From: Mobula hypostoma
Lineage: Eukaryota
Assembly: GCF_963921235.1 (NCBI RefSeq)
Contig: NC_086103.1
Location: 56,172,001-56,236,000, forward strand
DNA length: 64,000 bases
Reading direction: 5' to 3'
The notes beneath the pieces were generated by a model that worked only from the letters and a program-made list of their open reading frames with translations, made no database searches and was not told the origin of the DNA. Shown here in pieces: positions 1 through 48,259 of this stretch. The translations under genes and the position numbers were made by a program. How positions within the stretch are numbered: the first letter of the stretch is position 1; each line of letters begins with the position of its first letter.

Positions 1-440
1 AGTTTTTCTAGGGTAGAGTATCTGCGAGAGGCCCTGCTTTATACCATTTTTCATGCGATTCAAGTTAGGAACGCGATCAAATGCTCTACCAGCCGGGTTA
101 AGTCCAGTCCAATAATTCATGAACAACTATACAGAGTAAGATATTTAAGTTGTCTAGTTTTCTGCGCAGCATTCTAAACATTCAGCATTCTGGTAACAGA
201 TTATATGTTTCATATGAGAATCGATAACATTAAAATGAATTTGCAAAGTCATGGGCCATCCACTTGCACTAAATTCTGTAGTCTACACGCCATTTCCAAT
301 CGTCTAACCTAAAAGTAAACAAAACAATTCTGGAAGTACACAACAATTTGGGGATATTGTGTAAAGAGGGACAGGAAGAACCAGTTCTATCACAGGACAT
401 CAAGGAAAGATGAAACATCACAAGACACTGAACCGCTCAC

Positions 441-588
441 CGATCGGAACGAATGGATTCTCCTTCGTTTTCCTGATGAATTTGTCCGCAAACCCTTCCT
501 CTTTAGGCCTGGGCAAAGAAGTAAAGCCCTCAATGGCTGGGGGCTTCGTTAAATCAAGCGGCGAAGTCACCGCAACCGGCTTCGACAT
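441..588 (-). CDS. HIGD2A: HIG1 domain family member 2A, coding exon 1 (rest of gene lies left of the window)
   Basis: ATG at 588-586 reads MSKPVAVTSPLDLTKPPAIEGFTSLPRPKEEGFADKFIRKTKENPFVPIG. The KF.RKT.ENP.VPIG motif is typical of HIGD2A. Phase-1 donor G|GTGAGC at 441/440. Head-to-head with NOP16 as in human. Confidence 0.92.
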
Positions 589-929
589 CGTTGATGATTT
601 CCCGGAGAAACGAAGCAAAGTCAGGCGAGTTAGCCGCCAATTGGACACCCTAAAGTGCTGATCAATCTTCAAGGCGGGGCTAGCTTTATTATGTAACTAC
701 AAGGGATTAAAAAAAGGGTAAAAATAACAGGAGAATTGTCGAAAATGTATTGCAATATGGGAGGAATAAGTCTTATTTGTGCTGGGATTGTTTCTACATT
801 TGTGGGAGGACGGCGCTCGTCGGTCGGAGGTCAAAGTTGAAAGGTGGGCCGGCCGCGTTGTTGAGTGAGTGAGTGAGTGAGTGAGTGAGGGTTTTTGGCT
901 GTTTGTCAGGGTGTGGAATTTGCAGCAAG
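589..929. promoter_or_regulatory. Bidirectional promoter and 5'UTRs of HIGD2A/NOP16
   Basis: 341 bp between divergent ATGs, CpG-rich. Palindromic double CCAAT (CCAATTGG 637-644), GC-box-like GGCGGGGC near 673-680, (TGAG)7 at 862-889. Confidence 0.7.
862..889. repeat. (TGAG)7 microsatellite
   Basis: Seven perfect tetranucleotide copies. Confidence 0.95.
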
Positions 930-1036
930 ATGCCGAAAGCCAAAGGTAAAACCAGGAGGAAAAAGTTCGACTACAAGGCAAATCGGAAAAAGCTAAAGCG
1001 GAGGATGGCGAAGAAAGCGGCTCCTCGGATTGAGTG
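930..1036 (+). CDS. NOP16: Nucleolar protein 16, exon 1
   Basis: ATG at 930 reads MPKAKGKTRRKKFDYKANRKKLKRRMAKKAAPRIEC, matching the NOP16 N-terminus. Donor TG|GTGAGC, 107 nt. Confidence 0.96.
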
Positions 1037-2007
1037 GTGAGCGAGAGTGGTGGGCAACACGCGGTCCTTCAACATTGCAGAGATCTTCTCATAAAGCTAA
1101 TTTCAAACAGAAACGTTTCGATAGCCAAACAGAAAATAAAACGCGGTTGCTTTTGATTCCCTTAGTGTTCCGGGGTAGGGGGAGCATGAAATTACGCCTT
1201 AGCACCTTCGCATCTGGTCTTTACATAATTGTACCATCTTCTGTGGTTCTGCCCTACCTTTGGACTGGAACAAGCGCGGGCATTATATTAGATGAATCTA
1301 ATAAGTTATTAGTGATTCTGAGTCGGTTGTATGGCCGGTCTGTGAGGTAGTTCTCCGATCCGAAAATCAGTTCCCACATGTTTGTGAGGGAGACTTTGTA
1401 AGATCAGTTAGGCTGGGAAGAGCTCTGTGGTCTTTGATTACAATTCCTGGGTCAACGCTGGCTGACCCCCCCACCCAAATATTTTTTGTTCCAACGTGGT
1501 GTTCAGAATCTAACTAAGTGGTTTTCTGAGCGATTTCATTGGAAAAAGAATGGTTAGCTACGTGGATGCTCTCTCAAGTAACATATGAGCTCAATACCAT
1601 AACACGCAACAGCACAATGCAGGACCAGGCCCTTTGGCCTACGATGTCTATGCCAAACATGATGCCACTGTATCTGCCTGCATATGGTCTAAATATGTAA
1701 ATTCCCTGTCAGTTCATCTTCCTGTCTAAATGCTTTTAAACTTTACTTTCATATCTGCTTCCAGTGCTTGGCAGTGTGTTCAAGGCACCTACCACTCCCT
1801 GTGTAAAAGAAAAATTTGCCATGGAAATTACCTATAAACTTTCCCCCCCCTCACTATAAGCTGTACCCTCTAGTATTGACATTTCCAACCTGGGTAAAAG
1901 ACTGATTATCAGCTCTGTATATGATTCTCATAATTTTATATAATTCGATTATGTTGCCCCTCAGTTCCTGACACTGCAGTGAAAATGTCCACGTTTTTCC
2001 AACTTGG

Positions 2008-2910
2008 TAGTTTTGAGGAAGCAGAGAGGCTACAGAAAGACTTAAGAGAGATTAGGAGAATGGGCAAAGAAGTAGCAGGTGGCATACAGTGTCGGGAAGT
2101 GTATGATCTTGCAATTTGGTAGAAGAAATAAAAGTATACACTATTTTATAAATGGTGAGAAAATTCAAAAATCTGAGGTGCAAAGGGTCTTGGGAGTCCT
2201 TGAGCTGGATTCCCCAAAGGTTAATTTGCAGGTTGAGTCAGTGGTGAGGAAGGCAAATGCAATGTTAGCATTTATTTGGAGAGGACAAGAATATAAAAAT
2301 AAGGATGTAACATTGAGGTTTTAGAAGGCACTGGTGAGGCCTCACTTGGAGTATCGTGAGCAGTTTTGGACCCCTTATGTAAGAAAAGATTTGCTGACAT
2401 TGGAGAGGGTTCTAAGAAGGTTTTCAAAAATGATTCTGAGATTGAAAGACTTGTATGAGGAGCATATGACAGTTCTGAGCCTGTACTCACTAGAATTCAG
2501 AAGAATGAGGGGGGGGATCTCATTGAAGGCTATTGAATTTTGTAAGAATCTGATAGTATATGTGGAGAGGATGTTTCCTGTGGTGGGGGTGGCTTAAGAC
2601 CAGAGGGGACAGCCACAGAGTAGAGAGACGTCCATTTAGAATAGTGATGGGGCATTTCTTTAGCCAGAGAGTGGTGAATCTGTGGAATTCATTGCCACCG
2701 GGCCTCTGTGGAATTTGTTGTCATAGGGTGGCTGTGGAGGCCAAGTCTTTATGTATATCTAAAGCAGATGTTGATAGATTTTTGATTAGTCAGGGCATGA
2801 AGGGATATGGGGAGAATGCAGGAGATTGGGATTGAGAGGGAAATAGTGAAATGGTAAAGCAGACATGATGGGACAAATGGCCTAATTCTGCTCCTATATC
2901 TTATGGTCTT
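2008..2910 (+). mobile_element. CR1 LINE 3' fragment, nested in an older minus-strand CR1
   Basis: CR1 ORF2 C-terminal motifs (VRPHLEY..QFW.P, FFSQRVVNLWNSLP) and a TCTTATGGTCTT tail. Confidence 0.85.
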
Positions 2911-3992
2911 CTCTTTGTAACTAATAGCCTCTGAGTGCATCTGGCAGCATCTGAATGAGCCTCTTCTGCACTTCTTCAGAGCCACGTTCTTCCTGTACTG
3001 TGGTGACTAGAAATGCACACAGTACTCCTGATCAAAGTTTTGTACAGCTGCAGCATGATTTTCTGCTTGTTATACTGAACTCCTTGATAGGGGAAGGCAA
3101 GCATGATGTACACGTTTATACCATCCTATCTTTTTTATTACTGCTTTCAGAGAATATGGACTTGCATCCTGAGATTGGTCCTAAGGGTCCTTTCATTAAC
3201 TATGTACACGTTGAATATTTAACCCATTTCTTTGAATTGTTACCCAGGCCTTTAGATTATATGTCTGATAATTAAATCACTGTTACCACATTAAAATTTA
3301 CAGATTAATTTGAGTTATTTATAGTGGTTTGATGTGGGAATAATCCTGTTGTGTGTATTTTGGTGTGCTTTTGTGTGACAAAACAAACTACAAAACTGGA
3401 TACTTGAAGTGTTGTAAATTCCATTTTTCCAGCTGAGTTTACTGTGGGTTCACAAGATGATTAGTGAGGCAATGAAGTATTTTTAAAATCATTTAGTTAT
3501 CTGAGATAAAGGAAAATGTGTAATTTGTGAGCTGTATGAGTGGTTAGATACTAGTACCTGAAACTAGTCACTATTTTGGCAGTTGATACCTGCAGCTTGT
3601 TTAAATCAAAGCAACCTGAGTAATTGCACTCCTTTAAATAAGAACTAAAGAAAAGCAGAGAGCTGCAGCAATCACCACACAGTATCTTTTTCATCCAAGA
3701 CGAAGTCCTGGAGTGAGTGGAGCACCCTCATGTTTAGCTGAATGCAGAAATTTGTCTTCATAGTTATATTTGCTTCATGATCACATTTAAGCCACAATAC
3801 AACCAGTATCCAGGTAGACTGCTATTAAGCAAGGCTGCATAATTGAGAAAATTGTTGGGACAATTTTTAATGCCATATGCTGCACATTTCCTCCTACGAG
3901 CTTCCTACTAAATGGAACTAATTTACAGCACTAATGGGAAACTGTTCAAACTGTATTGTGTCCACTGGAGCTCTAAGGTCACACCTATCTTA

Positions 3993-5010
3993 GGCTCCGT
4001 CCACACTACACCGGATAATTTTGAAAACGAAGCTTTTTCTCTTCGTTTTGACCTTCTGCCCACACTGAAACGGCGTTTTCATCCCTTGAAAACGGAGATT
4101 TTCAGAAACAATCTCCAGAGTGAATAAATCTGAAAATGCCTAATATCTGTTGTAGTGTGTAACCGGAGAGATTTAAAAACGCTGTCATGACAACACCACA
4201 ACAACAATGCTTTTTCTGCTTCTGCTTGGTACTGCGCAAGCTGTTATAACATGCAGTCGGTGTGAACGGCGTGAGAGTTAAATTGTAAAGTGAGCTTTTT
4301 TGACTATTTAGAAACGCTGTCATGACGTGCTGGAACAGGTGGCCGCAGCGCGGCATTTCGTTGTTTTCTTGAACGCAACCACCTAACAATTTCAGAACAG
4401 GCGGCAACGAGACTGAAACCAAAAGGGTTAGAAATGTACTCACCAAATACTTTGACCCATAGCTTATTGAATAAATAAGTATACTTACTTTGCCCTGTTT
4501 TCTGTCCTCGCTTGTATGAAGGTGTTTCACCTATTTATGCAAGTACTTCTCTGACAATAGATGTGTAACAGCCTAATGTAACATTGTATGGAAATACAAG
4601 ATAACACTGATGCAGACGTTTTATACATTTAACAAGGTGCTTTATTAATGCAACAGAGTTAGTCAGTTTTTCAATGTTCGTCGTCAGCCGGGTCATACTG
4701 TCCATGAACTCCCTGTCGGTTGCCTCCATATGCTCCAGTATTTGTTTTTTTTAGTTTTAAGTCCTCCTGCACGAGAGCCAAGAGCAATTCCTCCTAAGCT
4801 TTTCTACTCTGTAACTGGACAAACACGCATCAAGTATACCATTTCCTCTTCGCTTGTTTTCTGTGTGTCCTGTGCATGCCCAGTAGGAGGAGATTTGCCC
4901 ATCTGTCTAATGTGGACGGAGATATTTTGAAAAACGCTTAGTGTGGACGCCTGTCGTTTTTGCTTGAAACCGGCGTTTTCAAAATTATCCGGCGTAGTGT
5001 GGACGTACTG
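3993..5010. mobile_element. PIF/Harbinger-like non-autonomous DNA transposon
   Basis: About 37-bp TIRs (GGCTCCGTCCACACTACACCGGATAATTTTGAAAACG; outermost bases of the right TIR diverged). TTA on both flanks (3990-3992, 5011-5013). Internal coiled-coil remnant MEATDREFMDSMTRLTTNIEKL resembles Harbinger ORF2 C-termini. Confidence 0.75.
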
Positions 5011-5019
5011 TTAGTAGTC

Positions 5020-5760
5020 AGGTTACAGTACCCAGATGATGCCTGTGTACATACCTATTCAGAGGCTAAGCACCAAGTTCCAGAGGTAAGCAGGAAGGTC
5101 TGCCTAGTGCTTAGCATCCACAAACAAGTCCTCAACCAATCTAACGCTGTTGTATACCACCATTTCTCCATCAAAGTCCACATATTGAGACCTGTGGGGA
5201 CAAATGGAACATCAGCCTGACTCTGACTACCATCGCTGGTGGTGAGAAAATATAGCATTTGATCAATTGACTTTAAACCTGGCAAAATGCTTGTGGTTTC
5301 TTGGGCAGCTATGATCAGGGATTCCATCTATCTATAGTAGGCACCTTGGCACTTGAGAGGTATGACCCATGTTTGTTTTTGCAAAATCCTCTAATCCCAA
5401 TGGAAGGAAAACCAAGCTGACATCCCCAGCATTGATGATCTAATTGTGCTTGTTTGGCTCTATTGGGCAGGCTACGTCCTTCATGAGCTCTTAAAACATT
5501 CATTTCAGAATTCAGTGAAGAGTACATTAGATGGACAGCAAATATGTATTCTCAAAGCCTCCTTGGATAGGGGTATGGGGGGTAGTAGGGCATGCAGTTT
5601 CACAACAGACTACCAAAAATTAAGGAGAAGCATTCAGCATGGCACTTACAGTCCGTGCATTGAGAGCACACGTAAACCCTGTGTAGACAGCAGAGTGCAT
5701 TGCTCACAAACTACCTTTCCGTGTGGTGGCACCTGCCCCACTTGTTTGTAGTAAAGGCTA
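5020..5760 (+). mobile_element. Old RTE/BovB-like LINE remnant
   Basis: Degenerate LQY.DD RT motif and decayed C-terminal cysteine-rich segment. Confidence 0.4.
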
Positions 5761-6314
5761 CAGAATATAAATTGGCCTCTAGTCTTTTTCAGGTCCATGA
5801 AACAAGTCACCCTTAACAGCCTAAGATGTAAGAAATGGGGAACTGGTGCAATGGGACTGGGAAGCAAACTTGCATTTATGTATCTCTTTATGCAATCTTT
5901 GATTACCTCAAGTTCTTTGTAGCTAATGAAGCACTTTTGGAATGCCGCACCTGGTATCACTAAACACAAATTTAAAACAAACCCTAAAATATAAAACTAT
6001 ACATCTCAAGAACAGGTCCATGATGTTGCACCAGACTAATTAAGATAATGAAGCCTGATTATACTCATTCCTTCCACCTATATGTGGTCCATATATCTCC
6101 TTTCTCTGCATTTCCATATGCCTGTAACACCGACTGTGCTTTTTTTCGATAGATGCTGCCTGGCCTGCTAAGTTCCTCCAGTATTTTGTGTGTGTTGCTT
6201 GAAATTCCAGTATCTGCAGATTTTCTCTTGTGATTAGTTTGTCTAACCTCTCTTTATAACATGTGTTGGCATCCTGGTAAACTTCTATACCCTGTCCAAA
6301 GTCTCCACCACCTA

Positions 6315-7874
6315 GATAGATAGATACTGTATTGATCTGTAGGAAATTACAGTGTCACAGTAGCATTACAAGTACACAGATATAAATATTAGAACAGAAG
6401 TAGAAAGAATAAAAAAAATAAGTTACAACAAACAATCTAATGGGAGGAGTCATCACTTCCCTGTCTATAGGTTGACACATTATAAAACTTAATGGCTGAG
6501 GGTAAGAATTACCTTGTATAGCGCTCTTTGGAGCAGCGTATTTGTCTTAGTCTATTACTAAAAGTGCTTCTCTGTTCAGTCAAGGTGGCATGCAGAGGGT
6601 GAGAAACATTGTTCAGAATTGCCATGACTTGCCATGGGGTCCTTTGTTCTACCACAGCCTCCAGTGTGTCCAGTTTATTTCCTATAACAGAGCCAGCCAG
6701 TCTAATCCATTTACTGAGCCTGTTGTCATCACCCACGTTGATGCCATTGCCCCAGCACATCACCGCTTAGAATATTGTACTGGCGACAGCAGACTGGTAG
6801 AACATGTAAGGGAGAGGCCTCTATGCTCCAAAGGACCTCAGTCTCCTCAGGAAGTAAAGGCGACTCTGGCCCTTCTTGTCCACGACCTCTTCCTTGGTGC
6901 TCCACTCAAGTCTGTCATCCAGGTGCACCCCCCAGGTACTTGTAGGTCCTCACCACATCCTCACTATCAATAGTAACAGGAAGCAATACAGGCTTAGAAC
7001 TGTATTCCTAAAGTCTATTACCATCTCCTTTGTCTTACTCATGTTGAGCAACAGATGATTCAACTTGCACCATTTGACAAAATCCTCCACCAGGGCCTTG
7101 TATTCATCCTCCCATCCTCCCTTTATACACCCAGCTATTGCTGAGTCATCAGAGAATTTCTGCAGATGATATAACTCAGTGTTGTATCTAAAATCCAAGG
7201 TATACAGCTGTAAGCAGGAAGGGAACCAATACAGTCCCTTGTGGGGCCCCAGTGCTGCTTATAGCCATGTCTGATACACAGCTCTGAAGCTGCACAAGCT
7301 GTGGTTTGCCGGTCAGGTAGTCCATTATCCAGGATAATTAGATTAGATTCAACTTTATTCTCATTGTGCCGAGTACAGATACAAAGCCAATGAAATGCAT
7401 TTAGCAACTGACCAGAAATGCAAAGAATAGTGTTATTTACAAAATATCTGCGAATAAAAAAGTGCTACAGCACACAAATATAAAAGTACTGAGACAGTAC
7501 AATACATATGCAATACTGCTTAGCGCTGTGATGAGAGGTTCAGCAGTGTCACAACCTCGGGGAAGAAGCTCTTCCTGTGCCTGCTGGTGCGGGAGCAGAG
7601 GCTCCTGTAGCGCCTACTGGATAGGAGGAGAGTAAAAAGTCCATGGTTAGGGTGAGATGCATCACTGATGATGCTTTTCACCCTGCCCAGGCAGCGTTTA
7701 TGGTAGATGTTCTCAATGGTGGGCAATTGGGTGCTGATAATCCGCTGGGCAGTTTTCACCACACGCTGGAGTGCTTTGCGGTCCGATACAGGACAATTGC
7801 CATACCACACTGAGATGCAGTTGGTGAGTATGCTCTCAGTGGTACAGCGGTAAAAGTCCGTCAGTATCCTGGGA
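6315..7874 (-). mobile_element. Two adjacent Rex1/Babar LINE fragments (6315-7335 and 7336-7874)
   Basis: LQKFSDDSAI, LNMSKTKEMVIDFR and FYRCTTESILTNCISVWYGNC..RKALQRVVKTAQRI motifs, with short tandem-repeat tails. Confidence 0.85.
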
Positions 7875-8645
7875 TAATGGGGCAACTCATACCAAACTAA
7901 ATTGCTCCACCTTTGTTTTGGTCCCTTGCAGTTGCTTGTCTTCCAGTGAATGAAGGTGGTGTTGGTGTGGGTCATCTAAGTGATTTTTTTTTCCAGAGAA
8001 GTTGTTGCAACTGAAAGCTCCAGTGCTGGACTCCACAAGGAAACCAACATTGGAGTGCTTGTCAGAAAAGATGGGTGAAGAGTGTGTAGCAGGTTCTGCT
8101 CTTTTGTGTTTGTATGTGCATTGTAAAAAACCATTTCTCTGAAAACTGTGAACTGTTGAATATAACAATTTCAGATTGTGGTTCTGTTCCTCAGCACCCC
8201 TTCTAGTACACCCGCCTATCCGTTTCATTTGCATCTTTTACTTTTGTGATAATCTTCAGGCTGTAGTTACCCTCCCTCTTTTATTCCCTTTTTGTTTTTC
8301 ATATTGAGTTCATTTTTAAGCTCTGATTTCAAGTACCAATGAACATTCCTTTGTCTGTGACAAAGATTAATTGATCCTACTGAGCATGCTCAGCATCTTG
8401 TTTCCTTTATTCCTGCTTCTTCATAATTTTGACTTTTTTTGTAATTAACTTTTAAATGGATAAGTTGGAGCAGGGTTCTTAAGTTTGAAAATGTTTTAAA
8501 TACAATATGTTTTGTAGCAAGATTTTGCGAAGGAGTATCACTTATTCCTCTCATAATCTAGAATTATAGGTAATATTCTAGAATAGGTTTGAAAGGAAGT
8601 TTAACTGAGTGATAATATTTAAATAATCCTAATTGTGTTTTAAAG

Positions 8646-8754
8646 TGCACAAATAAGAAATGCGTGGAACAACAGGAAATCAGTTGCTCAAAATCTGGCT
8701 GAAATGGGTTTGGCATGTGATCCAAATCGCACAGTTCCTATTAAGAAAACTGAG
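8646..8754 (+). CDS. NOP16: NOP16 exon 2
   Basis: AG|T..GAG|GTATGT, 109 nt. Reads AQIRNAWNNRKSVAQNLAEMGLACDPNRTVPIKKTE. Confidence 0.95.
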
Positions 8755-8811
8755 GTATGTGTTTCTGTTCTTCCCAAAATCTTATTTATTATGTTGTAAT
8801 ATTTAATGAAA

Positions 8812-9092
8812 TAAATAAATAGGCATCCGTTAGTCTCATGAGACCATGGATTTGTGCCTTGTAAGGCCTGGGCAAGGTTGTATGGAAGACCATCAGTTGC
8901 CCATGCTGCAAGTCTCCCCTCTCCATGCCACCGATGTTGTCCAAGGGAAGGGCATTAGGACCCATACAGCTTGGCACCAGTGTCGTCGCAGAGCAATGTG
9001 TGGTTAAGGACCTTGCTCAAGGACATGCTGCCTCAGCAAGGCTCGAACTAGCGACCTTCAAATCACTAGACCACTTGGTCACGCGCCAACAC
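8812..9092 (-). mobile_element. tRNA-derived CORE-type SINE (second copy at about 32680-32970)
   Basis: Pol III A/B-box-like head (CCAAGTGG..GTTCGAGCC), CORE-like GTCCTTGAGCAAGG..TTAACC and a (TATT)n tail. Two homologous copies in the window. Confidence 0.7.
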
Positions 9093-9538
9093 ATTTAATA
9101 GAACAGTATGGAATAGCAACAACTGTCTCTTTTGATTAACTGGAAAGTAGAGAGGATATTGAAATTTTAAAAAAACTGACAGCTTCTTCCATATCACAGA
9201 ATTATATCAAAGATGTGTTTATTAAGCATTGCCAGTTGGCTAACTCAATACTTAAATCCTGATGGCAATGGTACTCTCAAAATCAGGAACTTATGGCCAT
9301 GTATTGATAATATGCAACTGCATTTTGTGTATAATTTGGATATCGTTTTCCTATGGTGGTGTTACTTTTGTTCTCTCCTGGAGTTGTAAAGTTCTGTAAT
9401 GGTGAAGTAAGAGTGCTAAGTTACTGCTTGAAGATGGTGGACTAGCAGGACAGATCTGATGGGGTGTATCTGAATTCAAATTGCAATGATGCCAATCGAC
9501 CCGACAGTCTTGACTTGAATGATAAACTTAAGTGTTGT

Positions 9539-9792
9539 GGGTTCTTAAGTTTGAAAATGTTTTAAATACAAAACGTTTTGTAGCAAGATTTTGCACAGGA
9601 GTATCACTTATTCCTCTCGTAATCTAGAATTATAGGTAATATTCTAGAATAAGTTTGAAAGGAAGTTTAACTGAGTGATAATGTTTAAATAATCCTAATT
9701 GTGTTTTAAAGTGCACAAATAAGAAATGTGTGGAACAACAGGAAATCAGTTGCTCAAAATGTGGCTGAAATCGGTTTGGCGTGTGGTCGAAA
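9539..9792 (+). pseudogene. Partial duplicate of NOP16 intron-1 3' end plus most of exon 2
   Basis: Near-identical to 8473-8726 (offset 1066). The acceptor AG is retained at 9710-9711; the exon-2 donor was not copied. Confidence 0.9.
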
Positions 9793-10654
9793 CAGATGGG
9801 TTAAATTTTGGCTTTGAAATTTCAATGCTGCTACTTCTGATAGTACTTAACCTCTTTACCTGTAGTTGTGATTGATTATGCATGATTCAAATAATAGTTT
9901 GTTTAAATTGCCCTTTAAGTACTTTTAAGAAATTTGGCACTGGTAATGCCATTGAAAATTAGGGGGAAGTGTTTTCCTCCATTTAGGTTATTCTGGCACA
10001 ACAATATATAGCGACCATTCTCAAATTGAGTTCAGTGTAGTTTGAATGAAAGATTAATTTTATCAGGTCTTTAAGTAATTTATAAGTTTATTGGTATGAA
10101 AACTAATTCTTCTGGTGGGAATTCCTGAATAGAAAAACATAATCTGGAAATTACAATCATACACAACTTCCAATTTTAAAAATGCAGTATTATGTAAAAA
10201 ATAACAGATCTCTTGAATGAATCTAGCAATGGAATATCCTTGGTATTAAATTTCAAATGATAGAATTAAGTGTAGCTTTATAAAGCTGTGAGTCATATGG
10301 GTCCTAGAAATTTTTTATGAATGACTGGCATGGAGTCTCAGAGCAACCTAGCCTGGTCATAGTATCAACTCCCTTGTACCAAACACTGCAGAGGATTGCT
10401 ACAGGTTCATTCACTTGAGTAAGATAAAGTTCAAAGCAGTTAGCCCTTTCTCTTCTTTGAGCACAAGTGCACTTGAACCTTCAAAATTCAAGATTCAAAA
10501 AACTTTATTGTCATTCTAATCGTACATCAGCTCTGTAGGGCAGAATGAGACAGCATTTCCCAGGAGCAGTGCAATCATAACATAACAAACGCAACTCTAA
10601 ATAAATGATCTCTTGGTAAAATACCATATACTAAGATCATCAACAACTCTATTT

Positions 10655-11222
10655 GGAATTGTTGTTGAGGCCCTACATTAGTCAGGGTCGGCATGGATGT
10701 TGCATCCCAGCCGTCTATGTGATGTGCAAGCCAGGGTAGTATGATATGGAGAGCAAGCTGTTTCACACGTAGGAGGCTCTCCCTCTGGATGCAGTTGATA
10801 AATCCAAAGCAATGGCAGGGACTCATACAGTTTGACACCAACAACATCACAGGAGTTGCCAGCCAGCACTTAACTCAATGTAGGACTGCTTTAAGGACTC
10901 CAGCTCCAGATTATTCCTTGGGTTTACTCCCAAAGCCTTCCCAATGAGTGGGTGTAGCCACAGGATAGTGGAGATTTGAGAACTTTCCTTCTCCCAGATG
11001 AGCTGCCAACCATGGCCGATGAGCCCAATTTGCCCAAAGCAACTGCCTTTGCCCCTTCTCCTGACAATAGGAATGGTTCCACCGGGCTTAATAGCTGAGC
11101 TGCATGTGAAGGCCAGGAGCTAGACTTGGTTGTCAGAGGCTATTTGAGATGCATGCCATTGGGAGTATTTAGTAGGTAGTGGGAGCTTATCCCCACTACT
11201 ACCCGCAGCTATGACAACCTTA
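10655..11222 (-). mobile_element. RTE-related non-autonomous element with a structured 5' end
   Basis: RTE/Expander-type 5'UTR motif (GGTTGGCAGC..GGAGAAGGAAA), (CAA)n tail and several hairpins at the 5' end. Confidence 0.5.
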
Positions 11223-11934
11223 AGGAACCTTTTGGTTTTTTGGAATTGTATCTACAAAAATGTGTATCCTTGGGCTGGAAGGTATGAAATATATCTGGCA
11301 GTTTTTGGCATTTAAGTTAAAGCATGCGCAAGGAGTCAAGTGCTCTTCCTGCAGCTTTGGAGAAAGAGACGGTAAAGAAGCATATATTCTGAAATTCATA
11401 TATATCTCACTGAATGCTTCAACCAAAACCGAAGTATTCAATGTGTGAGTGCTGAAGATGGAATAAAAGAAGAACGGGCTTCCATAAAGAACTTTGAGTG
11501 GGGAATCACTCTTGCTTCTCAGCACTTCGTGCCAAATTGGCAGAGTCGCCATGTGATGTGTTTGTAAAAAAACTTTGAACAGCAGCTAAGTTTACCGGAG
11601 GCCTGTGTACTTCCCTACACGTCTGTATAACTAAACAGTCATAGTTACTTCTTTCTTTTAAAATATTCAAAATTGCACAAAATAGCATGTTCTGCTTCCA
11701 ATACTGAGGTGGATCATCCAAGTAATTCCCTTCCTCCCAGACTTCATGATCTGTTTGCAGTGTTTATGATTTGTGGAGTTATCCCAGTTATGCTAAAGCA
11801 TAATGAAATATTCAATGAATGGCGGTAACATGGAGTGCTTGATTTTTTTTGTATAGTGGGATTATTTTCCTTCAGTTGGTTAGTTCAGATATTTGGTTTG
11901 AAAAAGGATCTAATGCTTTCCCAGTGTAAATGAC

Positions 11935-12112
11935 AAATAAACTCTTCTCAGGTTTCCAGCCGAGTACAGGTATCAACTACAACCAACGTTTCAATGACAA
12001 ACTTGGCCATCTTAATCAGGGATGATGCCAGATGCAGATGGCAGAGTTTGTCATCAAAACATTGGAAAAATGGAGATTTGTACCCGGCTGGAAGCCCGAG
12101 AAGAGTTTATTT
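11935..12112. mobile_element. Short fold-back of Penelope-like terminal sequence
   Basis: Inverted arms (AAATAAACTCTTCTC..GAGAAGAGTTTATTT) with a decayed hammerhead-like core. Confidence 0.55.
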
Positions 12113-12358
12113 GATATTTGGTCTGTTACACTGCATCTTGCAATGCTCATTAGCTTACTGTCTGTGGTAGGCAATAAGTGGATTGACATTGAAAATACAC
12201 TGGCAAAATAGGTTTTGACAAAACAGTTTGCACTATTCCTTTACCTCAATTTGGAGGGGATAGAATTCCAGCAGAAGGTAGTGAAAAATATTTGTCTTGA
12301 GTTAGTATTTTGCAAAAGTGATTTGATAACAAAATTTAAACGATAATTTCTTTTACAG

Positions 12359-12419
12359 AAAATGGAAGTGTCCTCAACAGATGGAAAGCAAGTTGTAATT
12401 AAGCCATATGTCATTAATG
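12359..12419 (+). CDS. NOP16: NOP16 exon 3
   Basis: ttttacAG|..G|GTTTGT, 61 nt. Reads KMEVSSTDGKQVVIKPYVIN. Phases fit the neighbouring exons. Confidence 0.9.
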
Positions 12420-12718
12420 GTTTGTATTATGAGAATTTTTATTCTTGGATATCCTCATTTTTGAATTGTTATTGACAATATAATCTTTCGCTTTGTCTTG
12501 TGTAAGTTGTTGAAGATGAATTGGTGTGGAATTTGGTGTATGGATTAGCAGAGGGCAAGACTAAAATCAAACAATGTTATTTTGGCATTGGAATTCATGC
12601 TAAATTCAGTAAATGTTGCTTTGTTAGTCACTTGTAATCATGCAAGATTATTTGCCCATATGTATGAATATGAAATAATTGTAAAGTACAACATGTAACA
12701 CACTTTTCCCCACTGCAG

Positions 12719-12825
12719 AGCTAGAGGCAGAGGCAAGCCTCCCAGAAGTGACCAAGTCCACTCTTTCCAAAGAATTCATTGACTATGTACGGCATATGAT
12801 TGAGAACTACAAGGATAATTACAAG
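12719..12825 (+). CDS. NOP16: NOP16 exon 4
   Basis: cAG|..AAG|GTATAG, 107 nt. Reads ELEAEASLPEVTKSTLSKEFIDYVRHMIENYKDNYK. Confidence 0.95.
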
Positions 12826-13690
12826 GTATAGTACTTAAGAAAAAGTATTCCGATAGGCAGAGCTTGGGTGGGTGGAATCAGCAGTAGTTATTTCAGCTCC
12901 TCTTCACTCTGGTGTTGAGCAGGTCTTTTAACGTTGGTAGCTGACAGCCAGTGATCTTCTCTGCTGAGTGGACCACTCACTACAACCTGGACTTGGAGAG
13001 GGAGAAGGCGCCAGGAAACCAAACGGTGATAGAGATATGGAAATATTGAGATATTTCCACTAGTGGGAGAATTTTAAATGGGATCCCACTTTTTAATTAA
13101 AATAAATTTCTACCGAGTAGCTGGTTAAATCAAGCCAAACTTTTTTTTTTGCAAGTAATAGGAGGATGCAACTTCAAATCAGCTTGCAGTGAGCATTGGT
13201 TAAATTTGAAATTGCACTCCCATATCCATGCTTGGAGAAAATGTTGCTGTAGCAACCAGAAATTTTGATTTGTTTTGAATAGCATGAGATAGGAAAGTAA
13301 TACATGCCAAATGTTAATGTGTTTAACAGGGAAGAACCCTGCCGGGGAGAAGAGATTTAAAAAAAACATTTGCTAGGCTAGGAGAACGAAAGCCAAATTT
13401 TCTCAACCTAAAGTATAAGATTGAACAGGTAATTCTTAGGGAAAGTAATTATTCTAAGTCTAATCTTATCCTTGGACATGGATAGGAATCAATTGCACAA
13501 TCCCTGACAAGCATTCTATACTTTGCAGCTGTTAGATATTATTAAATCTGTAACTTGGATCATTTCAATCCTTAACATAGGGTCCACAACTGATGCTTTA
13601 ACTGGAACATACTAATGATCTGAATTATGATCTGGAGTCTGTTTCAAGTGTAGAACCATTGAGCATATGCTTTACATTTTTCCCTCTTAG

Positions 13691-13831
13691 GCAATGGCAA
13701 GAGATGAGATGAACTATTACCAGGACACGCCACATCAGATCAGGAAAAAAATTGACTCTTACAAACGCTTTTATCCAAGTGAATATGCTGACTTGCTTGC
13801 TGCTGTACAGGAGAAGATGGATGTCTCTTGA
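13691..13831 (+). CDS. NOP16: NOP16 exon 5 (terminal); joined CDS 525 nt, 174 aa
   Basis: Reads AMARDEMNYYQDTPHQIRKKIDSYKRFYPSEYADLLAAVQEKMDVS*, with TGA at 13829-13831. Confidence 0.95.
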   Translation, partial: AMARDEMNYYQDTPHQIRKKIDSYKRFYPSEYADLLAAVQEKMDVS

Positions 13832-20000: not shown

Positions 20001-20310
20001 CTTTGGAGTTTGTCGTGATCACCTCATCGCTGCACTCTGAATCCACAAGTCTCTCCTCACCTATTTCGTGAATTACTGGGACACTCTGAACTGCCACTTT
20101 AAGACTGTGCTTGAGTAAGATTTGCTAAGAATAGGTTCTAAGTTTGACTGTAAGGGAGCTATAGACGCATAACACTGTTAACTTCTGTTTAATAAAGTAG
20201 TTTATTTAATTTTCTATATTTTTGAGTAGATAGAAATAAATATAGTAGTTTTAATATTAAAACCCGACTCAATTTGTCATCTCTTGCTGGTACGTTATGA
20301 AATCGTAACA
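14097..20310 (+). mobile_element. Full-length decayed Gmr1-like Ty3/Gypsy LTR retrotransposon
   Basis: LTRs at 14097-14855 and 19674-20310 (TGTTAC..GTAACA). 4-bp TSD GTAG (14093-14096, 20311-20314). tRNA-Pro-type PBS TGGGGGCTCATCCGCGA at 14860-14876. PPT GGGGGAAGG at 19665-19673. Confidence 0.95.
14961..19495 (+). pseudogene. gag-pol polyprotein with frameshifts and stops, order Gag-ZnK-PR-INT-RT-RNaseH
   Basis: Gag (PPFDE..YFQHFEKVA, YELVPEAYRQRFR), degenerate CCHC knuckle, protease DTGA, integrase HHCC/rve/GPY-like segments (16826-17990), RT (RFCTDYQKVN, YIDD near 18705) and RNaseH (DAS, YTDHNPL). Confidence 0.92.
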
Positions 20311-21674: not shown

Positions 21675-24074
21675 TGATTGAGGGGTAATAACTGTTCCTG
21701 AACCCGATGGTGTGAGTCCTGAGGCTCCTGTACCTTCCTCCTGATGCCTGCAGCAAGAACCAAATATGTCCTAGTTGGTGGAAGTCCCTGATGATAGATG
21801 CTGTTTCGTGTAGATGCACTCAATGGTGGGGAGGGCTTTACCCGTGATGGACTAGGCCGTATCCACTACTTTTTGTAGGATTTTCTGTTCAAAGGCATTA
21901 ATGCTTTCATATCAGGCTGTGATACAACCAGTCAATATACTCTCCACTACACATCTATACAAATTTGTCTAAGTTTGGATGTTATGCCAAATCTACGCAA
22001 GCTCCTAAGTAGAGGCACTGCTGTGCTTCCTTCCTAATTGCACTTGCGTGTCGGGTGCAGGACAGGTCCTCCGAAATGATAACATAAAGAAATTTAAAAT
22101 TGCTGACCCTCTCCACCTCTGATCCCTCAATGAGGATTGGCTTATGGACCCATGATTTCCTCCTCCTGAAGTTAACAATCTGCTCCTTGGTCTTGCTGAC
22201 ATTGAGTAAGAGGTGGTTGTTGTGGCACTACTCAGCCAGATGTTCAACCTCCCTCCTATTTACTGATTTGTCACCACCTTTGATTTGACTTAACGACAGT
22301 GGTATCATCAGCAAACTTGAATATGGCATTGGAGCTGTGCTTGGCCACACAGACATGTGAAACAAGTAGAGCAGAGGGCTAAGCACACAGGTGTACCTGT
22401 CCTGATGGAGATAGTGGAGGAGATGCTGCTGCCAATCAGAACTGACTGGTCTGCAAGAGAGAAATTGAGGATCCAATTGCACAGAAAGGTATTGAGGCCA
22501 AGGTCTTGAAGCTTATTGATTAGTTTTGAGAGGACGACGTGAATGCCGAGCTGTAGTTAACTTAAACGAAGAAAACCTTGATGTACCTTTACTGTTCAAA
22601 TGTTCCAGGCTGAGTGAACAGCCAGGAGATGGCATCTGCTGTGGACCTTTTGCACCAGCAGATTGGAGTGGATCCAAGTTGCTGCTCAGGCAAGTGACCT
22701 CTCAAAACACTTCATCCCTGTGGATGTAAGTGCTACTGGACAATAGTCATTGAGGCAGATTACCACGTTCTTCTCAGGCACCCATATAAGAGTAGCCTGA
22801 TTTAAATATGCGGGCACCTCACACTGCCAAAGCAAGAGGTTAAAGGGCTCCAGCCAGTTGATTAGCAAAGGTCTTTCATACATGGTGATATAACCTGTCT
22901 GGGCTGGATACTTTTCGTGGGTCCACCCTCCTGGAGGCTGCTCGCATGTAAGCCTCAGGGACTGAAATCACAGGATCATCAGGAGCTGTGGGAGTTCGTG
23001 TTGGTTCCCCCATGTTTTAACGGTCGAAGTGAGCATAAAAGGCATCGAGTTCATCTGGAAGCGAAGCCCTGTTGTGGCTTACGTTGCTTAATTTTACTTT
23101 ATAAGAGGTGATAGCATTCAAACCCCGCCACAACTGTGGAGCATCATTATTTAATTCAAGTTTAGTCCGGAATTGCCTGTAAGATGGCTTTCCGGAGATC
23201 ATATTTGGATTTCTTGTGACCAAGAATGTTACAACACCTGAATACTTCTGATCTAGCCCTTTGGAGAATGCAGATCTCATGGTTCTTCCAGTGCTTCTGT
23301 TTGGGGAAAACCTGGAAGTATAATTCTGAAAGCTCTGTTCTTTCATTAAGTGGCTAGTATTTTCTAATTGGATTATTTTTATCTATGGAATTTTCTTATC
23401 TTTTGGATTAAAATTACCTGTTTTATGCTAGGCACCATCTTTAGATCCTCTCTTCTTCGAGTAGTAAGGGCCTCTGTCACTGTCCTGTCCTTTTTCTCTT
23501 TGTTCAATCAAAGCCTTGTTTCTGAATTCTAAAAGAACCTTGGATTTCAACACCAGAATCCAACAACATATCTGTCTGATACTTCCTAATGGTATAAAAT
23601 AGCAGAAAATAATGGGAGCAGAGGTAGGGTTAAAAAATGTCCTTATTTGCCCATAGTTAAAATCATAAGCTGATACAGCAAACAACTCATCTATTAACCT
23701 ACACCTTGAATCACATCAAGAAACCTTATGAGAGTAATCAAACTTCTCTCATTGTGCTTATGATAGGACTATCAGAGCTTTTGATAAAAGGAAAATTGGA
23801 AGAATCTTGTTTACCAATATGCTTAATCTAAAACCTGTTACCACAAAGTGCAGAGATTTATTCAAAGGAACGTCAGATCACCATGAGGAAGGCAGTATAT
23901 GTTGAGAACTTTTCTTTAAAAAAAAAGTTTGTGTCGGGTATAAACACTGACAGGGATCCACAGTGTGTTTCTAGTCTATTGCATTTATTTGCAATATGGC
24001 CTCTTCTACATTGGAGAAACCAAAGGCAGATTGTGTGATCACTTTGCAGAGCACCTGCACTGAGTCCGCAGGGC

Positions 24075-26560
24075 TGTGTACTAAGCCCACTCCTTTACTC
24101 TCTGTATACTCATGACTGTGCTGCCACCCACAGCTCCAATCTGCTAATTAAATTTGCTGATGATACTACACTAATTGCCCAAATCTCAAATAATAATGAG
24201 GCAGCCTACAGAGAGGAAGTCATCACCCTGATACAGTGGTGTCAAGAAAACAACCTCTCCCTCAATGTCACAAAAACAAAGGAGCTGGTTGTGGACTACA
24301 GGAGGAATGGAAACAGGCTAACCCCTATACAGGTTTCCCCCGCCATCCGAAGGTAGAGCGTTCCTATGAAACGGTTCATAAGCCGGAATGTTGTAAAGTG
24401 AAGAAGCAATTACCATTTATTTATATGGGAAAATTTTGTGAGCGTTCACAGACCCAAAAATAACCTACCAAATCATGCCAAATAACACATAAAACCTAAA
24501 ATAACAGTAACATATAGTAAAAGCAGGAATGATATGATAAATACACAGCCTATATAAAGTAGAAAGACTTTTCCACAATCATTGCTGGCACTGTTCTCCG
24601 TAGCGAAAATCTCACGTAAGTGCTCTCAGCAGAAAATCTCACGCAAGCGCTGTTGGCAGAAACACTCTCTCCAGTAACCTTTAAGCTATGAAGCTGCCAA
24701 ATCATACCAAAATCATACACGTAAAAATACACAGCCTATATAAAGTAGAAATAATGCATGTACAGTGTAGTATCACTTATGGGAATCGGGAAGACAGCTT
24801 GCTGAGCACACTGATAGTGGTGTGTTAGACTGAGTTGTCAGAGGTTGGGGTGGTGCAGTGGCCCCCACACTCCGGGCTGCCGACCAATACCAATCCGTAA
24901 AGCATGCAGGGGTATAGCGGTAGCCAAGAGGCACACAGCACATCTTTAAGAAAAAAGCTGAAATAAACATGCTAATTAATTAGATGCCGCCCGGCACGTA
25001 ATTGTCGGCCCAGATCAGAGGCGACGCAATCAGCAATCACCTCTGATCTGAGCTGACATTTACGTGCCGAGCGGCACCTAATTAATTAGCATGTTTATTT
25101 TGGCTTTTTTCTTAAAGATGTGCTGTGTGCCTCCCGGCTACCGCTGCATTCTCCGCGAATCGGTATCTGTCTGCGGCCTGTGGGTTGGGGTGGTGGGACA
25201 CTGGGGTGTCATTTCATCGTCGTCTGTTTCCATGAGGGTAGGCAGGTCATCTTCTATGACTGTCCGCCTCGATGTCGAAGGTCGAGGTTCGTCGTCTGCT
25301 GTGGCTGATGTGGAAGGCTTGCTTGACTGCTGAGCCTCGCGCATTTTTCTATCATACAGTTCTTTGTAAGCACTCAAACCATCCTGCAAATATGCCCTAA
25401 ACCGACGTACCCTTTCAAAATTGAAGTTGTACTTGATCATTGCAGCGAAAATCTCACGTAGTTGCTTCACGTTCAGTTCCTGTACGACTTAACTTTCGCT
25501 ACTGAATTTGGTTTCGATTGTTATCCTTTCCTCTTCCAATTGCATCAGCTCTTCATCTATCAGTTCTTGGTCATGGGATGCCAAAACCTCTTCAACATCA
25601 TCTTCGTCAACTTCCACAAGCCAAACTCATCTTGTCCTTACTTCATTCACCATGATGGAAACGTTTAATTATGTCGAGTTTTACGCTAAGTGTAACACCC
25701 TTACGAGCTATTTTAGGCTTTTCCGATACTTTAGAACTCACCTTGCAAACGGCTGCTCACAGACACGTGTTTAAGCAATGCCGGTGAGAATGCCGTTCTG
25801 AATCCGGGGGAGAGTGGGTGCTCGGGGCACGCGCTGTTTTTTTTTTCACACGCTGCCTTTCTTCGTAACAGTGAAAACACCTGTTAGCGAAAACAGGTAA
25901 CTAATGTAGGTCTTTCGTAACAGTGAGGTTTCATAAAGTGAACGTTCGAAAAGTGGGGGAGACCTGTAGACATAAATGGATCTGGGGTTGACAGAGTGAA
26001 CAGCTTTAAGTTCCTCAGCATAAACATCACCAAGGATCTCACGTGGTCTGTATGTACTGGTGGTGTGAAATTCTAAGAACTTTCTATAGGGCCATGATTG
26101 GGTGCATCCTGACTGGCTGCAACACTGCCTAGTATGGGAACTGTACTTCCCTCAATTGCAGGACTCTGCAGAGAGTGGTGCCGACAGCCCAGCACATCCG
26201 TAAATGTGAACTTCCCATTGTTCAGGACATTTACAAAGACAGGTGTGTAAAAAGAGCCCAAAGAATCATTGGAGTCCCGAGTCACCCCAACCACAAACTG
26301 TTACATCTGCTATCATCTGGGAAACGGTACCGCAGCATAAAAACCAGGACCAATAGGCTCCGGGACAGCTTTCTCCACCAGGCTAGCAGACTGCTTAATT
26401 CATGCTGATACAACTTTATTTCTATGATATATTGACTGTCCTGTTGTACATGATATTTATTATAAAGTACTATAATTGCACATCACACATTTGAACGGAG
26501 ATGTAACAAAGATTTTTACTCCTCCTGTATTTGAAGGATGTAAGTAATAAAGTTAATTCA
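24075..26560 (+). mobile_element. Rex1/Babar LINE 3' part split by a Tigger insertion
   Basis: KFADDT..LNVTKTKELVVDYR reads on across the TA site (ACCCCTATA|GACATAAATGG). C-terminal GKRYRSIKTRTNRLRDSF. Confidence 0.85.
24330..25966 (-). mobile_element. Tc1/mariner-pogo (Tigger-like) DNA transposon, internally deleted
   Basis: TIRs CAGGTTTCCCCCGC../..GTGGGGGAGACCTG and TA TSD (24328-24329, 25967-25968). Transposase C-terminal remnant (..DVEEVLASHDQEL.DEELMQL..; ORF 25138-25470). Confidence 0.85.
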
Positions 26561-27642
26561 ATTCAATTGTGGGAAGCACTTTTGTTTCTCAAACCCAAGC
26601 AGAAAAGTGTACAACTTAGTATGTCTGAGCATTATTAGCTTGGATTCAAGTAACTGATTTGAAGGTGCATACAGTAATTTAGAAACCAGCAGATTTACAA
26701 AACCACTAGAACAGCCTAATTAATCTAGGTTCAAATTATCAAAAAAAAAAATTAGAATCGGAAAACTTGTATTTAATAAAGTGTAGTTTTATTTAATCAT
26801 TTAAAAATATAAGAATTAAAGTAACAATTGTCTTTGAATAGCTAAAATAATTTTAGAAAGTACTGTAAATGAATAGAAAGACAAAGAATTAATCGAGTTT
26901 CTAAAACTAGTTTTATAATAAAAATCACAAACGTGTTTATTGGGATTAGCTTCAAAATGAAAATAAGTAAGGTTTTCAGCATTGGCATTAAATTGTAAAC
27001 AAGTTACAAATTTTGGTTCTATTTTTGATGAAGATTTGAATTTTCTCACCTCTGCAACAGCAGTTTTTGAGAATAAGAATTATTTCATACCTGACTGGAG
27101 CAATTAACAATTCGATCCAACCACCCCTCCACTTCATCTGCCTGGAAATTCATAAAGAGCTCCTTTGCACAGTCTTCAGCGTGTTTACCTTTGATTTGAA
27201 TGAATGTACCTCCATGTTTTTCCTGATTTCTGGAAAAGTGTATTTAGTTTACACCATCTCCTAGCACCAGAACCTGCCACTGTTTATTGAATAAGGATGA
27301 GTGGGCAGTTGAGAATTGTCAGCTATTGTTTCAGCTAAAATACATGTTATAACAATTACATTAAAGAAAAATAAAGTTATTACCTTTTGCCACCACATTT
27401 GACAATTATGATGTATTGGATGCTGAACTAGTTTTGAGATGCTTAATCTATGTTAACTTAATCTCCTATATTAACTATTTTAAATACAGACATTATTATG
27501 TAATTTTTTGCAAAGACAAATTATCTATTTGGACATTGTGTGGGAGAAGGAAATTATGAAAGGTGCTGTCGGCAGGATTACAGTAGTTAATCAAAAATCC
27601 TACAGAACTATGAATTGATCTCTGGTTAGACCTTCCGCAAAA

Positions 27643-27804
27643 TCAATTGAGCAAAAGGTCCTTAACATCACAGATACTTTCAGAGATCTTGCTTCCATTG
27701 TCACTGACATTAATAGCCATAAGGAAAAGTTTTCTTTCATGTTTCATGTCCTGGACTTGAGGCTTTTTCTGAAGATCATAAATACTGAGTGCTCCAGCAA
27801 GGTC
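27643..27804 (-). pseudogene. ARL10: ARL10/ARL9-family small GTPase, last coding exon
   Basis: cAG|GAC, reads DLAGALSIYDLQKKPQVQDMKHERKLFLMAINVSDNGSKISESICDVKDLLLN*. Matches the ARL9/ARL10 C-terminal exon. Lies at the syntenic ARL10 position between NOP16 and KIAA1191. Confidence 0.75.
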
Positions 27805-28305
27805 CTGTGGGTAACATTGATAATAATTGAATAAAAGCTTTTATTTATGAAGAATGGTCAATGAATACAGAAGTGGCAAACTGTTGTATTTTTGTTTAAG
27901 CAAGTGGTTCAGGATAAAATTGACATCAATTTGGTAAGGCACAGCATATACAAGGCAACAAGAAAATAAAGTTTTCATTACAGCATTAGTTCACAAAAGG
28001 GTTTAAGGAAAAATCTATGCTTAGATTGACAACAATGATTACAGAGCAATAGTTTTTTTTTGACTTTCAGGTTTGATGTTATTTGTTGCAATCTGAAATG
28101 GGCTCATGAGCCAGTTTAAATGATTAGGGATGGACAATTCATGCTGACCTTAACATCAATATCCACATTGCACAACTGAAAAAAAATATAACTGATACAT
28201 TCTGAATATTATGAGAGGAAAACAGTTGCAACTTGACAATCTATTTTGCTTTCAAGCACCCAAAGGAGTACCTTTTTTAAACATCATATTAGAGGATTTA
28301 CTAAC

Positions 28306-28482
28306 CTGTTTATTTGTCAATAGCACTAGAAGCAGTGATAGATCTTTTCTGAGCAGTTGCCCCAGCTCCTACCCTGCAAGGGGCAAACATTCCTGATCTG
28401 TGGAATCCACCAGGTAGATTAAAGAGTTGTATTTACAGTAGGTATAGATTCCAGTAAGACTGCAAGATGTAGTTGCCATCAA
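28306..28482 (-). pseudogene. ARL10: ARL10/ARL9-family penultimate exon with frameshift and premature stop
   Basis: tAG|..CAG|GTTAGT, 177 nt. Reads xDGNYILQSYWNLYL, then a +1 shift, then KYNSLIYLVDSTDQECLPLAG*ELGQLLRKDLSLLLVLLTNKQ. TAG at 28371-28369. The NKQ|D G4 motif spans the junction to the next exon. Confidence 0.8.
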
Positions 28483-35057: not shown

Positions 35058-35770
35058 ATACAGCATGGTAACAGGCTCTTCAGCCCAGCTGATCCATGCC
35101 AACCAAGATTCCCACCTAAGCTAGTCCCAATTGTCCATGTTTGGCCCATGTCACTCCAAGCCTTTCCTACTGCCTTTTAAATGTTGTTAATGTACCAGCC
35201 TCAACCGCAGCTCATTCCATATACTGACCACCATCTGGGTGAAAATGTTGTGTCTCCCGTTCCTATTAAATCGCTCACCATTTATCTTAAAACTATGTCC
35301 TCTAGTTCTTGATTCTCCAGTCTTGGAGTAAAAGACTGTGTGCATTGACCCTATGCCCCTCATGCTTTTATACACCTCTGCAAGATGACCCTTCATTCTC
35401 CTACGCTCCAGAGAGAAGAGCTCAAGCTTACTCAACCTCTTTCCATGAATTAGAATCAGAATCAGAATCAGAATCAGGTTTATTATCACCAGCATGTGGA
35501 ATGAAATTTGTTAATTTAGCAAGCTGTAAATCCTGGCAACATTGTTGTTAATCTCCTCTGAATTCTTTCCAACTTAATGACATCTTTCCCATAGGATAAC
35601 CAAAACTGAACAGAATATTCCAGACGCAGCCTCACCAACATCTCGTATAAATACAACATAACATCCCAACTTGTATAATCAATGCCCTGACTGATGAAGG
35701 CCAGCATGCCAGATGTCTTCTTCACCACTCTGTCTACCTGCGACACTACTTTTAGGGAACTATATACATG
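35058..35770 (-). mobile_element. CR1 3' fragment
   Basis: LVRLRLEYSVQFW and LFSLERRRMKG motifs. Confidence 0.8.
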
Positions 35771-36189
35771 CCTGCCTCATTAATCCAAACTAATCCCATC
35801 CCATTTATAAACAGGCAAGGAATAATGCAGAGATTAAGAGACGTTTAGATCATTCTGCATGTACATTGTGAGAATCTGCTTAAGAATTTTCTGGTTGTGA
35901 ACAGATCAACTACTGTAACATCCTCAGATTAATGGGAGGATGAAAGGTATCTGAAATTGTTACATTGACAAACAATTTAGCGCACTGTTTAGTTTTTATG
36001 TGAATTCCCAGCTGTACTATCTAAATGCAACTCACTGTCAGTGACCAGAAAACACTATCTAACAACAATGCAAAGATAACAAAGGGACAATGATGCTGGA
36101 AATCTGAAGTCCGTGTAAAAATAGGAATATACAATAGCATTAGTTGTAAGTTAAGTTACAAGATAAATTCACCAGCATATATTGAGAGT

Positions 36190-46311: not shown

Positions 46312-46317
<6 letters not shown>

Positions 46318-46368
<51 letters not shown>
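46318..46368. repeat. (TG)n microsatellite
   Basis: About 25 dinucleotide repeats. Confidence 0.95.
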
Positions 46369-46370
<2 letters not shown>

Positions 46371-48071: not shown

Positions 48072-48259
48072 CAATCGAACATTCGTCCGGCATACTAGAA
48101 AAGATGTCCTTGCCGATTGGGATACACCGCAGGGCATTCAGTTATGATGATGCCTTAGAAGATTTGTCGCCAATGACTCCTCCACCTTCTGATATGGGAA
48201 GCAATATTTTGTGGAAACAGCCAGTTATACCTGCGAGGAAATACCAACAATTATCGATG
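48072..48259 (+). CDS. KIAA1191: KIAA1191 coding exon 2
   Basis: Reads KMSLPIGIHRRAFSYDDALEDLSPMTPPPSDMGS..WKQPVIPARKYQQL; 188 nt, AG/GT boundaries. Confidence 0.95.

Follow-up and report, generated by a model that had tools for sequence, protein, structure and literature searches.

A probable unitary ARL10 pseudogene between KIAA1191 and NOP16 in the devil ray Mobula hypostoma

Gene order around the former ARL10

The window, that is, the whole 64,000-nucleotide stretch of Mobula hypostoma DNA analyzed here, contains no N and carries KIAA1191, a relic of ARL10, NOP16, and HIGD2A. This series matches Callorhinchus (elephant fish), Pristis (sawfish), and human in both order and orientations, which bears out the syntenic ARL10 position between KIAA1191 and NOP16-HIGD2A that had been proposed in a preliminary description of this DNA. 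The first exon of HIGD2A (436..588, minus strand) is 100% identical over 50 residues to the M. hypostoma protein, with two differences from M. birostris and more from Hypanus, Hemitrygon, Pristis, and Rhinoraja. NOP16, charted by tblastx against its Callorhinchus counterpart, spans 927..13807 on the plus strand (exons 927-1040, 8644-8757, 12350-12427, 12712-12828, and 13691-13807) and lies tail to tail with the ARL10 relic. The first coding exon of KIAA1191, or P33MONOX (48089..48256, plus strand; Pfam PF15302, E 4e-22), stands head to head with the former gene.

In the elephant fish, the protein P0016 is encoded within the series P33MONOX (KIAA1191), ARL, NOP16, HIGD2A, and CLTB; sawfish P0018 is encoded between P33MONOX and NOP16, and sevengill shark P0009 adjoins NOP16. 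A second elephant-fish protein named "ARL9" (P0105) adjoins SRP72, as does human ARL9. Rhinoraja sequence reached through HIGD2A ends inside NOP16, and no ARL10 sequence was found in that stretch. When aligned to the sawfish locus, the window is collinear in reverse orientation, with 72-81% identity through introns and intergenic DNA.

The locus holds several further features. A 254-nt piece of NOP16 (8473-8726), which takes in the end of the upstream intron and the greater part of the second coding exon, recurs about 1 kb further downstream, at 9539-9792, with 94.9% identity; the duplicate is devoid of the exon end and donor site. An LTR retrotransposon absent from the sawfish locus occupies 14161-20275, between NOP16 and the ARL10 relic; its LTRs (14161-14817 and 19682-20275) are 91-93% identical and enclose gag, protease, reverse transcriptase, and integrase frames at 15.2-19.4 kb. 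Within a 2.5-kb stretch without sawfish counterpart (24073-26570) there is a 110-codon open frame (MKQLREIFAAMIKYNFNFERV...) at 25138-25470 on the minus strand, for which Pfam returned no convincing match and the protein atlas was uninformative. Finally, a (CA)n/(TG)n microsatellite at 46290-46370, in the GC-richer region upstream of KIAA1191, appears as CV/TH runs among the reading frames.

Two surviving exons and a missing 5' half

In sawfish, sevengill shark (Heptranchias), and elephant fish, ARL10 is made up of four coding exons; the gene is intact in sawfish, eight sharks, and elephant fish. Read from its canonical first exon, Pristis ARL10 has an intact 219-residue frame that includes a hydrophobic anchor, and each of its exon junctions shows AG/GT. 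The RefSeq sawfish model (P0018, 190 residues) starts instead in an exon overlapping KIAA1191 (10001-10045 of the sawfish locus, L001) and skips the anchor exon (L001 19609-19740).

In the window, two exons with an Arf-like core and intact splice sites remain, as originally described, both on the minus strand. Lesions were scored in nucleotide alignments of these exons with their orthologues in Pristis, Heptranchias, and Callorhinchus. The relic of coding exon 3 (segment A, 28306..28482) is flanked by tag| upstream and |gttagt downstream, so that neither the AG acceptor nor the GT donor has been lost, and it encodes the switch II or G3-to-G4 region (..DGNYILQSYWNLYL.. LIYLVDSTDQ.. LLTNKQ). It measures 177 nt rather than the 176 nt found in the three aligned orthologues because of a 1-nt insertion, its boundaries being otherwise identical to theirs. 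The insertion lies within 28433..28438, with the extra base at about 28438 (CCTA-C-TGT versus CCTA-AGT in Pristis), and shifts the reading frame; the incoming frame, which reads DGNYILQSYWNLYLL, is then closed by TAA at 28435-28433. The next frame reads KYNSLIYLVDSTDQECLPLAG up to a TAG at 28371-28369, followed by ELGQLLRKDLSLLLVLLTNKQ. This nonsense codon (28369..28371), located in the frame that carries LIYLVDS...NKQ, replaces the CAA or CAG that specifies the Gln of LAGQEL in the orthologues; it differs from Pristis CAA by a C-to-T change at the first codon position, and its third-position G matches the CAG of sharks. In addition, a GAT codon at 28478..28480 replaces GGT of Pristis, Heptranchias, and Callorhinchus, turning the first Gly of IGG in the G3 motif into Asp. 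The frameshift, the stop, and this replacement had all been noticed before orthologues were aligned, and all of them are real lesions by that comparison.

Intron 3 (27805..28305) is retained and collinear with the Pristis intron, which holds an extra 1.28-kb LINE; the relic is therefore not a processed copy. The relic of the last coding exon (segment B, 27626..27804), which covers the G5 region and the C-terminal helix, is 179 nt long, compared with 180 nt in Pristis and Heptranchias and 177 nt in the third orthologue. It starts at 27804 after cacag| and reads DLAGALSIYDLQKKPQVQDMKHERKLFLMAINVSDNGSKISESICDVKDLLLN (DLAGAL...KDLLLN) up to a TGA at 27645-27643, whereas its +1 frame continues with QLILRKV and ends at TAA (27628-27626), the ancestral stop. 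The cause is a 1-nt deletion within 27643..27655, between 27655 and 27654 (CTT-TTGCT versus CTTATTACT in Pristis), which brings the TGA into frame nine codons early. All three orthologues carry the extra base at this point, and the deletion that the preliminary description had suspected is thus confirmed. Across the junction of the two relic exons, the G4 motif NKxD is kept as NKQ|D, and the four splice dinucleotides are all retained. The longest open frame left is nevertheless not above 53 codons.

The loss of exons 1 and 2 is the largest lesion, and it is new with respect to the first reading of the locus. Sawfish positions L001 19122-19512 pair with window positions 36183-35786, and L001 24416-24636 with 35770-35531; the intervening 4.9 kb of sawfish sequence is represented by about 15 nt in the window. 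This deletion junction (35770..35786, minus strand; about 4.9 kb relative to Pristis L001 19513-24415) is collinear with Pristis on both sides and was confirmed by alignments across both breakpoints. The sawfish interval missing from the window holds exon 1 (L001 19609-19740), which encodes the membrane anchor and a basic stretch and includes the start codon, and exon 2 (L001 23992-24163), which provides the P-loop and switch I. Since both exons are present in sharks and elephant fish, the difference is a deletion in the lineage of the window.

Searches for a displaced 5' half gave concordant results. Scans of the whole window for P-loop and WDxGG motifs in six frames yielded none in an Arf-like context; neither the G1 P-loop GxxxxGK[ST] of exon 2 nor exon 2 itself occurs anywhere in the window, and the N-terminal transmembrane anchor and basic stretch present in Pristis are likewise absent from it. 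Eleven ARL9/ARL10 proteins had no tblastn match to their residues 1-98 in the window, and a sensitive blastn search of the whole window with Pristis exons 1 and 2 plus 100-nt flanks returned only chance matches of 15-18 nt. A tblastn match at 58332-58448 on the plus strand (GKTSIL..., E 2.6) was considered as a displaced exon 2 and dismissed as chance, as it falls within KIAA1191 in the wrong orientation and lacks any match at the DNA level.

Paralogue identity and selection on the relic

Sawfish P0018 is by far the best tblastn match to the relic, with 47 of 52 residues identical in segment B (E 1e-25) and 74% identity in segment A (E 2.5e-14). A phmmer search with segment B recovered one true homologue, the 219-residue great white shark protein P0006, among low-complexity matches; a search of solved structures with the same segment gave chance matches only, and Pfam found no Arf match in the stop-free relic pieces, which are too short. 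The search with P0006 retrieved one tight set, made up of 218-219-residue proteins of eight sharks and elephant fish plus the 190-residue sawfish model, and another of proteins from tetrapods and ray-finned fishes under the names ARL9 or ARL10.

Within vertebrates, the metazoan Arl10 gave rise to the in-paralogues ARL9 and ARL10 (Vargová et al., PMC8358228). A maximum-likelihood tree of 39 sequences, in which the conceptual peptide of the window was included with an X at each break, separated them with 100/100 support. The relic is sister to the Pristis protein (100/100) within a cartilaginous-fish ARL10 clade (99/96). This group, encoded at the KIAA1191 locus, belongs with the tetrapod and gar proteins named ARL10, whereas human ARL9, Callorhinchus P0105, and their kin form the ARL9 clade, which does not hold the relic. 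NCBI names all cartilaginous-fish genes at the ARL10 position "ARL9" (e.g., Pristis P0018, Heptranchias P0009, and Callorhinchus P0016). Clade and gene order together identify the relic as ARL10 and the label on its orthologues as an annotation error. The earlier hesitation between the two paralogues is thereby settled for ARL10, on tree and synteny, and against ARL9, which is linked to SRP72 in Callorhinchus and Mobula; the likeness to ARL9 peptides that had fed this doubt fits the NCBI naming.

We next consider the substitution pattern. Two outgroups were used to polarise the window-sawfish differences across 117 codons, which comprise 273 nonsynonymous and 78 synonymous sites. The window branch accumulated 22 nonsynonymous and 5 synonymous changes (omega of about 1.25), against 2 and 5 on the sawfish branch (omega of about 0.11; Fisher's exact test, p = 0.014). 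The nonsynonymous share on the window branch, 81%, is close to the neutral expectation of 78% and agrees with an omega of 1. The value usual in the family, 0.2, would give 41% and is rejected on this branch (p = 2e-5). Together with the disabling lesions, this neutral pattern sustains the pseudogene status originally assigned to the locus.

The flanking noncoding DNA differs from sawfish at 475 of 2253 aligned sites (21%), or about 10.5% per branch, and the relic exons show 7.6% change on the window branch versus 2.0% on the sawfish branch. These small counts give the rough estimate that constraint may have been absent from the relic during about two thirds of the period since the split from sawfish. 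Because the relic holds about two thirds of a full neutral branch, ARL10 was probably lost early on the branch leading from that split. From this load, stingrays at least would all be predicted to have the 4.9-kb deletion in common. Relaxed constraint already in the ray stem was also considered and is unsupported, as omega is similar (0.2-0.27) in the sawfish and sevengill lineages. Over full coding sequences, ARL10 has evolved faster on the sawfish than on the sevengill shark lineage (31 versus 12 unique replacements; Tajima test, p = 0.004). Given the similar omega values, this speed looks like a generally faster clock rather than relaxed selection.

Probable loss of ARL10, and comparable genes

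From these sequence comparisons, we consider it about 90% probable that the locus carries a unitary, that is, unprocessed and in-place, ARL10 pseudogene of a myliobatiform ray, from which no GTPase would be made. The ancestral gene would have specified the start codon, anchor, and basic stretch in exon 1, the P-loop and switch I in exon 2, the G3-to-G4 region in a 176-nt exon 3, and the G5 region and C-terminal helix in exon 4. A deletion of about 4.9 kb would have taken away exons 1 and 2, leaving the gene with no start codon, membrane anchor, or nucleotide-binding loop. The surviving exons 3 and 4 would then have drifted without selection while keeping their splice sites, to reach a load of one +1 frameshift, one nonsense codon, one -1 frameshift, and 21 other amino acid replacements. 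The loss may have been tolerated because the paralogue ARL9 remains.

Some other readings of the locus have to be weighed. The single-base lesions and the 4.9-kb gap were read from one assembly, and ARL10 might be intact in the animal if they were errors of sequencing or assembly, the indels arising in homopolymers, the base change from miscalling, and the gap from a collapse of 4.9 kb. Exact look-ups of the products of two window reading frames, made to reach independent contigs from this species, returned no record. Both indels are indeed single-base, and in a window without N a silent collapse would not show by inspection. Nonetheless, errors would be required at all four independent disabling events, neither the insertion nor the deletion lies in a homopolymer run of more than 3 bases, the TAG shares its third-position G with the shark codon, and the junction runs cleanly into collinear sequence on both sides. 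Such errors would also leave the 21 further replacements and the neutral nonsynonymous-to-synonymous ratio unexplained, and we regard them as a most improbable source of all these lesions. Scarcely more credible is the idea that an intact copy elsewhere in the genome maintains ARL10 function and that the relic is what decay has left of the parental gene after relocation or duplication. The DNA read here amounts to 64 kb of the genome, and absence elsewhere is deduced from protein annotation, which leaves some room for such a copy. Matches to shark ARL10, however, include no ARL10-clade protein of either Mobula species, although Mobula HIGD2A and ARL9 are in the collection, and an ARL10-clade gene occupies one and the same position in every cartilaginous fish examined.

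Another possibility is that the two exons persist in a different role, such as forming exons of a noncoding RNA or supplying a neighboring transcript with an alternative 3' end. Both preserve their AG and GT, and their identity to Pristis is about 90%, compared with about 79% for the flanking noncoding DNA. Higher exon identity is, however, expected when only one of the two lineages is unconstrained, and the window branch accounts for 27 of the 34 polarised changes. Moreover, at about 10% neutral change per site the chance of keeping eight splice-site bases is about 0.4, and the open frames left are short, as described above. We therefore give a retained function of this kind very little credence, and the unitary pseudogene stands as the preferred reading.

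The loss so predicted is lineage-specific, as originally claimed, with respect to sawfish, sharks, and chimaera, whose ARL10 is intact. No report of an ARL10 loss in rays was found in the literature searched. An intact ARL9 elsewhere in the genome, also anticipated by the preliminary description, is annotated in M. hypostoma beside SRP72 (P0139, 241 residues, full length), with a hydrophobic N terminus and all G motifs (GLDGAGKTS, FLEIGGG, VVDSAD, and ANKQD). It is 92-94% identical to ARL9 of other stingrays and of the second Mobula species, and ARL9 in rays begins with a hydrophobic segment. By annotation, ARL9 proteins are recorded for Narcine, Hemitrygon, Hypanus, both Mobula species, and Rhinoraja. 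In these same rays, no ARL10-clade protein was found among the annotated proteins matching shark ARL10, where an orthologue would be expected near the top, at the rank of the Pristis one; the collection includes ARL9 of all of them and HIGD2A of all except Narcine. The matches listed included neither an ARL9-clade protein from Pristis nor an ARL10-clade protein from Scyliorhinus, though other proteins of both genera are in the collection. These two absences may reflect further losses or annotation gaps.

At the level of annotation, six ray proteomes with ARL9 and without an ARL10-clade protein, and Pristis with the reverse, hint at complementary retention of the paralogues. ARL10 might then have been lost repeatedly or very early in rays, so that stingrays and devil rays, and perhaps skates and electric rays, kept only ARL9, while sawfish kept ARL10 and may lack ARL9. 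We consider this broader scenario unlikely on present indications, but, if true, it would mean that two membrane-anchored, mitochondrion-associated GTPases could replace each other.

ARL10 is among the least understood GTPases of the ARF family. The relic would represent a natural, long-standing ARL10 knockout in a lineage in which the gene is dispensable, with ARL9 as the likely backup, a possibility that is useful for interpreting knockouts in model animals. The mislabeling of cartilaginous-fish ARL10 as "ARL9" would, in turn, mislead surveys of both paralogues.

Human ARL10 belongs to the same clade as the relic and has the same flanking genes, KIAA1191 and NOP16-HIGD2A. In human cells, it is anchored to the mitochondrial outer membrane, with some of the protein on peroxisomes, is targeted through an N-terminal transmembrane segment and a basic stretch, lacks the catalytic Gln, and has been linked to mitophagy and mTORC2 (PMC11166204). 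Intact shark and sawfish ARL10 have the layout of the human protein; the relic, being without anchor or nucleotide-binding loop, cannot encode a protein of this type.

ARL10 of cartilaginous fishes shares with the relic its position between KIAA1191 and NOP16 and its exon boundaries (a phase-1 176-nt exon and the NKQ|D junction). The Pristis gene, with collinear introns, is 82% identical to the relic in amino acids over the 114 surviving aligned positions. Unlike the relic, these genes encode intact proteins of 218-219 residues with membrane anchor and P-loop and are under purifying selection (omega 0.2-0.27), whereas the relic is without exons 1 and 2, carries three frame-breaking lesions, and has an omega of about 1. 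ARL9 has the four-exon structure in common and about 45-55% identity to the relic over the surviving exons, but it adjoins SRP72, falls in the opposite clade (100/100), and is annotated as intact in Mobula.

To conclude, the relic resembles unitary pseudogenes in general, as cataloged for primates (PMC2864566), in which a single-copy gene is disabled at its ancestral locus with introns kept while relatives have a working orthologue. A comparable unitary case in the wider family is the human ARF2 pseudogene mentioned in PMC8358228. Gene and lineage are the only respects in which the relic differs from such known cases; it is otherwise an ordinary gene loss, a new instance of a common event.
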